DNA of 63,782 nucleotides, filler included, from Octopus bimaculoides (GCF_001194135.2; 7 parts of 6 records of this genome joined end to end with filler, not necessarily neighbours in it); one strand, 5' to 3'. Shown: positions 54,440 through 55,362, numbered from the whole stretch's first letter. Made by a program: numbers and translations. The notes: generated by a model not told the origin, from the sequence alone.

Positions 54440-55023
54440 AATTAAAACCATCAGAAGTCGAATTAAAACCATCAGAAGTCGAATTAAAACCATCAGAAGT
54501 CGAATTAAAACCATCAGGGATGGAATTAAAACCATCGGGGATGGAATTAAAACCATCAGAAATGGAATTAAAACCATCAGAAATGGAAGTAAAACCATCA
54601 GAAATGGAAGTAAAACCATCAGAAATGGAAGTAAAACCATCAGAAATGGAATTAAAACCATCAGAAATGGAATTAAAACCATCAGAAATGGAATTAAAAC
54701 CATCAGAAATGGAATTAAAACCATTAGAGATGGAATTAAAACCATTAGAGATGGAATTAAAACCATCAGAAATGGAATTAAAACCATCTGAAGTGGAATT
54801 AAAACCATCAGAAGTGGAATTAAAACCATCAGAGATGGAAGTAAAACCATCAGAAGTCGAAGTAAAACCATCAGAAGTCGAAGTAAAATCATCAGAGATG
54901 GGAGTAAAACCATCAGAGATGGAATTAAAACCATCAGAGATGGAATTAAAACCATCAGAGATGGAATTAAAACCATCAGAGATGGATGTAAACCCATCAG
55001 AGATGGAAGTAAACCCATCAGGG
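54440..55023 (+). repeat. Coding 21-bp minisatellite, about 28 visible units (consensus ATGGAATTAAAACCATCAGAA, MELKPSE)
   Basis: 24 units inside the ORF plus about 4 upstream units up to the N gap (53991-54439). Variants occur in blocks (MEVKPSE x3, MELKPLE x2, VELKPSE). Confidence 0.97.
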
Positions 55024-55362
55024 ATAACACGAATGCCATCAACAATGAAACTAAAACCATCAAAAATTCGGTATTCACAAAGTTCCATTAGATCAACATT
55101 TTACAAAGGTATTAGTCTTGCGAAAACAGTTGAAAATGTTAAGGCCGGTAAAGAAAGGATCGAAAACTTTCCAACTATAAATGTCGTATTACACGAAGGA
55201 AACTATTACTCCCTTGATAACAGGAGGCTTTGGGTATTTAAAAAGCTCGAAGATAAAGGATACTGTTCGAAAATAAAAGTTCACGTGTCAAATGTTAATT
55301 TAGAAACACATCGCAAATACACCACAAGAAACGGAGGAACGAGTATCAGAATGATCGTTTAA
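54520..55362 (+). CDS. ParB/sulfiredoxin-superfamily (Tox-ParB-like) domain protein with N-terminal heptad repeats; 5' end runs into an assembly gap
   Basis: 280-aa ORF; the frame is also open upstream to the gap edge at 54440. The C-terminal 105 aa (55045-55362) read MKLKPSKIRYSQSSIRSTFYKGISLAKTVENVKAGKERIENFPTINVVLHEGNYYSLDNRRLWVFKKLEDKGYCSKIKV...KYTTRNGGTSIRMIV. The P..IRYSQ.SI, P.I.V and Y.LDNRRL motifs match the toxin-type ParB/Srx domain by motif recognition, not by a database search. No stops or frameshifts. Confidence 0.8.
   Translation: MELKPSGMELKPSEMELKPSEMEVKPSEMEVKPSEMEVKPSEMELKPSEMELKPSEMELKPSEMELKPLEMELKPLEMELKPSEMELKPSEVELKPSEVELKPSEMEVKPSEVEVKPSEVEVKSSEMGVKPSEMELKPSEMELKPSEMELKPSEMDVNPSEMEVNPSGITRMPSTMKLKPSKIRYSQSSIRSTFYKGISLAKTVENVKAGKERIENFPTINVVLHEGNYYSLDNRRLWVFKKLEDKGYCSKIKVHVSNVNLETHRKYTTRNGGTSIRMIV

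Follow-up and report, generated by a model that had tools for sequence, protein, structure and literature searches.

Intragenic coding minisatellites, or variable-number tandem repeats (VNTRs), are familiar from the adhesin repeats of the yeast FLO1 type, the VNTRs of mucins and the zinc-finger arrays of PRDM9. They consist of head-to-tail units whose length is a multiple of three, keep the reading frame, change copy number rapidly by slippage or unequal exchange, have a homogenised interior and diverged edges, and yield low-complexity products. All of these features recur in a 21-nucleotide (nt) array of Octopus bimaculoides that stands in front of, and in frame with, a gene for a domain of the ParB/sulfiredoxin fold. 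The array lies in a 63,782-nt stretch of DNA (GCF_001194135.2; seven parts of six records joined end to end with filler), which at its full length is called the window here.

Mechanistically, the octopus array is an intragenic coding minisatellite, although one with an unusual founding unit. Unlike the units of the VNTRs named above, this one corresponds to the seven codons with which the gene itself begins, the initiator ATG among them. The array is situated at the extreme N-terminus, where each ancestral unit could initiate translation, and its unit, a piece of a folded domain (strand beta-1), is neither a linker nor a domain in full. Literature searches found no account of a minisatellite that carries a start codon or of an N-terminal extension of this kind. 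The array is likely to be a start-heptad minisatellite that is both transcribed and translated, most likely into a disordered, acidic tail preceding the ParB-like domain.

Origin, register, age and length variation of the array

Tandem Repeats Finder identified one tandem array at 54440-55021, with a period of 21 nt, 27.7 copies, 93% matches, 0% indels and a score of 863; it is the single 21-nt array in the piece that holds it (window 51739-56551). When the array is laid out in register, 27 full units span 54457-55023 and a partial unit stands at the edge of an assembly gap (Table 1). The consensus frame, ATG GAA TTA AAA CCA TCA GAA, translates as MELKPSE, and the units are close variants of it, with 15 distinct unit sequences and 11 distinct peptides. 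Identical variants are grouped in runs of 2-4 units. The first codon is ATG in 20 of the 27 units, GTC in five and GTG in two. The frame contains no stop from 54442 through the array and the 105-codon unique region to the terminal TAA. Head-to-tail units of 21 nt, or seven codons, and a frame that continues into the domain are thus found together, as in coding minisatellites. There are 201 open codons before the Met of the domain, 175 of them counted from the first assembled ATG.

The repeat-bearing gene is intronless, and its product of 280 amino acids (aa) is a called gene on chromosome CM046626.1 of GCA_001194135.2, at ~7.47 Mb. Because three Val-initial units precede the first assembled ATG in the open frame, the true start is probably inside the gap. 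The O. bimaculoides assembly is short-read-derived and comprises 713,915 contigs (PMC10700109). Since the array stands at a gap edge of such an assembly, its unit count is a lower bound and the lengths of its identical runs are unsizable. By analogy with Octopus vulgaris, the 449-N gap should contain the 5' boundary of the array and more units.

The first heptad of the domain is in perfect phase with the array, as its last unit (55045 = 54457 + 28 x 21), and by our own estimate the chance of 18/21 identity at a single in-register position is ~1e-6. Repeat-free homologues of bivalves (Saccostrea, Mytilus and Mya) start with MELKPSEI(R/Y/F)(Y/F)SQ, which is the unit peptide, and a Sinanodonta protein starts with MMELKPSEIRYSQ. 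Among 210 fetched family members, MELKPSE is the commonest first heptad, followed by MKLKPSE and MYLKPSE, and 157 of 201 members have the motif [LIVMF]xPxx[IVL]x[FY][STV][QKH] inside their first 5 residues. Two paralogues in O. bimaculoides, P0211 (MLLKPSEIRYTQ) and P0004 (MSLIELSPSEIRYSQ), lack a repeat. A transcript-like Logan contig of a close paralogue (L002) is also repeat-free; it starts with MKLKPSEIRYSQ and has an in-frame stop two codons upstream of its ATG. In an AlphaFold2 (AF2) model of the domain, the heptad forms strand beta-1 and the following turn, with a predicted local distance difference test score (pLDDT) above 90. Because the homologues start with the unit peptide, the direction of change was the amplification of the first seven codons of an existing gene. 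Construction of the array by tandem amplification of the gene's own start is thus strongly supported by sequence comparison.

The array also occurs in O. vulgaris. A search of a 5.8-billion-sequence set with the whole repeat-plus-domain protein gave domain matches only and no repeat-bearing homologue; the O. vulgaris orthologue (P0185; CAI9741457.1 / A0AA36FKX6) surfaced only in an exhaustive HMMER search, and nothing was found in the literature under its UniProt and GenBank accessions. This protein is encoded on OX597839.1 of GCA_951406725.2, an assembly based on Oxford Nanopore Technologies (ONT) reads (PMC10700109). The upstream flank of the window aligns with O. vulgaris L003 4330-4875 at 87% column identity and the 3' flank with L003 5440-5800 at 78%, with several indels; the two loci are therefore syntenic. 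The orthologue, copy B, has 12 units, then MTRMPSS, then MELRPSE-IRYTQ. Copy A, ~5 kb upstream within a ~6.3-kb tandem segmental duplication, has 68 units (up to 1.4 kb of array), then MTPMPSS, then MELKPSE-IRFSQ, all in a single open frame of 573 codons. Over the 3.8 kb that precede the arrays the two copies are 98.2% identical, and their gene bodies are 92.3% identical. The gene-bearing duplication is contained in L004 1-12800, that is, OX597839.1 32,569,961-32,582,760.

Both O. vulgaris arrays are directly preceded by (TA)n-TATATAAAG-AGAGAGAAAGGAA, and the O. bimaculoides flank ends in a like (TA)n just before the gap. TATATAAAG resembles a TATA box, carries an in-frame TAA and may act as a promoter. 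In both copies, units 1 and 2 lack an ATG, and the first ATG is in unit 3. The degenerate unit, M/I-T-R/P-MPS-S/T, and the boundaries are common to both species, so that the array is older than their split, dated to ~34 million years (My) ago (PMC10700109, citing Jiang et al. 2022). Copy number differs between species and between paralogues, with at least 27 units in O. bimaculoides and 12 and 68 in O. vulgaris, which supports the view that it is highly labile.

The units themselves have diverged between the species. GAG as the seventh codon (44% of units) and GTC as the first are confined to the O. bimaculoides array; the O. vulgaris arrays alone have GAA as the fourth codon, TTT as the third and ACG as the first. 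Copy A has a higher-order periodicity of 63 and 84 nt. The Leu codon is CTA in the 5'-most unit and in the domain heptad and TTA in interior units, as expected for fossil edges and a turning-over interior under concerted evolution. No third copy of the domain was found in O. bimaculoides L001 or O. vulgaris L004. A 4.6-kb N gap at O. bimaculoides L001 2620-7233, ~2.7 kb upstream of the array, stands where O. vulgaris has the 68-unit copy and a long (GA)n array, and could hide a second O. bimaculoides copy of the gene.

These comparisons support the following history. In an ancestor of O. bimaculoides and O. vulgaris, a 21-bp start segment, ATG GAA YTA AAA CCA TCA GAA (MELKPSE), was tandemly duplicated. 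Because the segment is a multiple of three and has its own ATG, added copies lengthen the frame upstream and leave the domain undisturbed. The array would later have grown, shrunk and been homogenised via slippage or unequal exchange, its edge units becoming fossils while the interior units keep turning over. The outcome would be a fast-evolving domain preceded by a coding minisatellite that has 12 to 68 units, or more.

A preliminary description of the locus, made from the window alone, had proposed that a minisatellite grew from the gene's own start heptad. The exact register of the unit with the first seven codons of the domain, the blocks of identical variants, the absence of in-frame stops from the units and the repeat-free homologues agree with this proposal, and its count of 20 ATG-initial units among the 24 that run from the first ATG is correct; the G..ATGG context, which it saw in most of them, is present in all 20. 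The comparison of orthologues and paralogues that it called for yielded the two O. vulgaris arrays and the repeat-free P0211 and P0004. Its extension of at least 190 aa corresponds to the open codons counted above, 201 in total or 175 from the first ATG. Its account of growth by tandem duplication stands, but the term 'de novo' was loose, since the tail is recycled coding sequence and not former non-coding DNA.

Coding status of the array

The array is probably translated. Since four of the six frames of the unit consensus are open, the stop-freeness of the O. bimaculoides array alone proves little, and it was rejected as coding evidence for this reason. Over the three arrays (107 units, ~2.2 kb), the frame joined to the domain has no stops and no indels. 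Of the three remaining consensus-open frames, two have acquired stops: 15 each in copy A, and four and three in copy B. The 24 distinct single-base unit variants include none of the seven possible stop-making changes (hypergeometric P = 0.028). The TATA-like box and the in-frame TAA are upstream of the O. vulgaris arrays, not between array and domain. If the array is present in the mRNA, scanning would initiate inside it.

Several observations weigh against translation of the array as part of a functional gene. In all three arrays the antisense -1 frame, too, is free of stops. Synonymous and nonsynonymous changes among the distinct variants stand at 5:19, close to the neutral 11:45, and the array peptide has no clear signal of purifying selection beyond the missing stops and indels. 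No Logan transcript-derived protein matching the gene was found in the collections searched. The deposited copy-B model, CAI9741457.1, starts at unit 7 (L003 5001) and not at the unit-3 ATG (L003 4917), and copy-B transcripts could begin inside the array. The O. bimaculoides array is at a contig edge of a short-read assembly. Lastly, the near-neutral ratio of nonsynonymous to synonymous divergence (omega) of the domain between species makes partial decay possible. Copy A, unlike neighbouring copy B, is called from the equivalent upstream ATG, and the unit-7 start of copy B is either an inconsistent annotation or an internal transcript start. Exact-protein look-ups of the forms starting at 55045 and 54982, and of P0004, returned no contigs, and the 280-aa window product and the 573-aa O. 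vulgaris product are absent from the clustered protein collection.

The open antisense frame and the near-neutral variants would also fit a non-coding minisatellite in the promoter or 5' leader, with translation starting at 55045 or 55033 and the open frame as a by-product of a stop-poor unit, four of whose six consensus frames are open. Nearly all family members start directly at the heptad, as this alternative would have it. It is nevertheless unlikely. An array in the mRNA would be scanned from its first AUG, with strong contexts and a frame unbroken into the domain. The lack of stops and indels in 107 units, beside two other open frames that have decayed, is unexpected for a non-coding array 34 My old, and the position of the TATA-like box and in-frame stop, upstream of the array instead of between it and the domain, also speaks against this alternative.

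The preliminary description also suggested that the in-frame AUGs form a ladder which, by alternative transcription starts or leaky scanning, would yield graded tail lengths from one allele. ATG heads 74% of the O. bimaculoides units (20 of 27), and the internal unit-7 start of the deposited copy-B model is compatible with internal starts. The ladder does not extend to O. vulgaris, where ATG heads 15 of 68 units in copy A and 3 of 12 in copy B (22-25%) and most units begin with GTG. Position 1 varies more than any other position of the unit; thus, the ATGs are not maintained as such. All 20 array ATGs of O. bimaculoides have G at -3 and G at +4. As a general rule of scanning, carried here to cephalopods by analogy, a strong start context makes bypass inefficient, and the uniform context therefore argues against leaky scanning. 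A functional ladder is accordingly improbable. The ATG richness of O. bimaculoides is explained by amplification of one unit type; the most plausible view is that the ATGs are left over from the way the array arose and were multiplied by chance with that unit type. Alternative transcription starts within the array are possible.

Divergence of the domain bears on whether the gene is functional. Between O. bimaculoides and O. vulgaris copy A, nonsynonymous divergence (dN) is 0.176 and synonymous divergence (dS) 0.225, giving an omega of 0.78 (1.21 in the N-terminal half and 0.43 in the C-terminal half); between O. bimaculoides and copy B, the values are dN 0.214, dS 0.246 and omega 0.87 (1.33 and 0.47). 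Copies A and B differ by dN 0.14 and dS 0.061, with 30 nonsynonymous and 4 synonymous changes; positive selection is not claimed from the resulting omega of 2.3 (binomial P 0.09, Fisher P 0.13). The open reading frame (ORF) is intact in all three copies despite ~71 substitutions on the tree, for which the probability of no stop under neutrality is ~0.014, and the family-invariant residues are retained in all three. This pattern is suggestive of a functional gene under relaxed or diversifying selection, and the evolution of the domain is fast and possibly diversifying. Relaxed or diversifying selection is common in conflict-related genes.

It is highly improbable that the array is an assembly artefact or the locus a decaying pseudogene: the array does adjoin a 449-N gap in a highly fragmented assembly, where repeats could be mis-assembled or inflated and identical runs are unsizable by short reads, and the domain omega is near 1, but the independent ONT-based O. 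vulgaris assembly contains two such arrays at the syntenic locus, the longer reaching 1.4 kb, and the ORF and invariant residues are intact in three copies, with the C-terminal half of the domain constrained.

If translated, the array would most likely encode a disordered, acidic tail of the form (M/V/T)-E-(L/V/F)-(K/E)-P-S-E. The peptide has a net charge of -25 over 194 aa, and the AF2 model predicts no secondary structure in it, with pLDDT values of 50-66 compared with 94-98 in the domain. Each Lys of the array peptide precedes Pro, and Arg is absent. Trypsin does not cut Lys-Pro; thus, the predicted tail should resist trypsin and escape standard shotgun proteomics. The S-E-x-E of each unit presumably resembles a site of acidophilic kinases.

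The ParB-like domain and its relatives

Tox-ParBL1 is defined by a ParB-like fold, a conserved N-terminal serine and a [NT][RT][RT] motif in which RR prevails (Zhang et al. 2012, PMC3482391). The type is also scattered among eukaryotes. It is a C-terminal module of bacterial polymorphic toxins and is present in metazoa too (Zhang et al. 2012, PMC3482391), which is the only literature found to use 'ParBL1' as a family name; there is no Pfam model for it. The octopus domain has a ParB-type alpha+beta fold, a conserved N-terminal Ser and an NRR motif, and is probably a member of Tox-ParBL1, as assigned by modelled fold and motifs. The fold, the N-terminal Ser and the N-R-R, placed where ParB has its arginine box, are shared with the bacterial Tox-ParBL1 domains. 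The architectures differ: the bacterial domain is C-terminal and follows a pretoxin-HINT region, whereas in octopus and bivalves the domain stands alone, starting at residue 1, and a trafficking region is missing. Bacterial members are expected to have HINT, RHS or filamentous-haemagglutinin repeats upstream.

Sequence searches alone did not classify the domain. Neither the domain nor the full ORF matched Pfam, nor did the domain across a 32-sequence alignment, and PDB searches with the single sequence and with a profile gave no match to the domain. Homologues numbered 31 in a word-indexed search, and exhaustive HMMER found 5045 cluster representatives at E <= 0.001. An AlphaFold2 model of the domain built from 32 sequences has a mean pLDDT of 90.7. 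In Foldseek searches with this model, the top 50 PDB matches were all ParB, Noc, KorB, sulfiredoxin, Atu1540, SbnI or serine kinase (best E 5e-4, range to 1e-2; TM ~0.5; identity 11-22%). The uniformity of these matches indicates that the domain has the ParB/sulfiredoxin (Srx) fold. In the family of 32 sequences, P13, Q20, F27, D-N-R-R-L and F73 are invariant, and S19 and S22 are at least 90% conserved.

The octopus domain shares its fold with the N-terminal CTPase of ParB, Noc, sulfiredoxin and the ParB-fold ATPase toxin ToxB (bioRxiv 10.64898/2026.05.05.722872), and an arginine-rich motif follows strand beta-3, the nucleotide-binding place of ParB, in the octopus domain as well. In contrast to ParB and Srx, the octopus domain has no helix-turn-helix or DNA-binding part and carries DNRRL instead of GERRxR (ParB) or GCHR (Srx). 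By this motif and by sequence, with no sequence-level matches to PDB or to Pfam ParBc, it is neither a ParB CTPase nor a sulfiredoxin proper.

Some members of the family have further features. One of the 32 aligned members gave a weak PT-HINT match (PF07591, E 0.0032), which is attributed to the bacterial P0022, with a ..VHNS.. motif before its domain, and P0219 has a signal-like N-terminus. P0003, a paralogue-like protein of 160 aa from Logan contigs, has an acidic repeat of another kind at the C-terminus (…DSNMDIEDSNMGIEDGDLGIEDGDLGFEDGDLDFE…). In bivalve members the C-terminal tails are long and either of low complexity or repeated, as in P0066 of Mya arenaria with repeats of ~52 aa, and P0068, P0047 and P0061 contain two or three copies of the domain. 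The family seems to be prone to acquiring repeats.

Neighbouring features and biological meaning

Table 1. Features of the repeat-bearing locus in the O. bimaculoides window
Feature	Position	Strand	Remarks
Upstream flank	53480-53990	+	Orthologous to O. vulgaris flanks; ends in (TA)n at 53968-53990
Assembly gap, 449 N	53991-54439	.	Array begins at first base 3' of gap; 5' array end hidden
21-nt minisatellite, probably coding	54440-55023	+	27 full units and one partial; consensus ATGGAATTAAAACCATCAGAA = MELKPSE
First in-frame assembled ATG	54520-54522	+	Start of 280-aa gene call
Degenerate old unit ITRMPST	55024-55044	+	9/21 mismatches, in register; in-frame ATG at 55033
Domain's own first heptad MKLKPSK	55045-55065	+	18/21 identical to consensus ATGGAATTAAAACCATCAGAA, in register; source of the repeat unit
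105-aa domain coding sequence, predicted ParB/sulfiredoxin fold, probably of Tox-ParBL1 type	55045-55362	+	Invariant S..Q..F..DNRRL..F; TAA at 55360-55362
3' flank, probable 3' untranslated region	55363-55700	+	Common to O. vulgaris; T26 run at 55481-55506

The 3' flank (55363-55700) contains no AATAAA or ATTAAA; its only related hexamer is TATAAA at 55452. Farther downstream, an inverted repeat at 55668-55753 / 55961-56061, with 37 nt 100% and 53 nt 87% complementary, flanks a 10-N gap (55952-55961) and (CTAT)n/(AG)n runs; this structure is a foldback element or else a palindrome created by the assembly. A unit of ~100-120 nt occurs in two to three direct copies at 51846-52140; the copies are 76-87% identical and resemble a repeat of the short interspersed or satellite type.

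A bolder interpretation, which we regard as doubtful, is that of a 'self-priming' coding minisatellite, in which all founding units bring an initiator codon and part of strand beta-1, the tail is freely expandable and the domain stays intact wherever transcription starts. The length of the tail, 12 to 68 or more heptads and unequal even in recent paralogues, would then be a selected, tunable regulator of a fast-diversifying, toxin-derived ParB-like effector in octopus conflict or immunity, and the tail might serve as a decoy beta-1 strand or as an autoinhibitory or solubilising tail.

The locus makes the birth of a protein tail readable from sequence, since the source heptad, fossil units at both edges and the ancestral state in bivalves and octopus paralogues can all be seen, and three descendant arrays of very different length are available for comparison. 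It points to a route for N-terminal extension that never breaks the gene, because the duplicated units are in frame and each brings a start codon. ParB-like domains of this bacterial toxin type have undergone a large, uncharacterised expansion in molluscs, of which the gene is a part. Should the tail not be translated, or its length be irrelevant, the array would be tidy but, as a minisatellite, ordinary. Given a translated tail whose length has an effect, the gene would provide a natural system for the tuning of a domain by repeat length.

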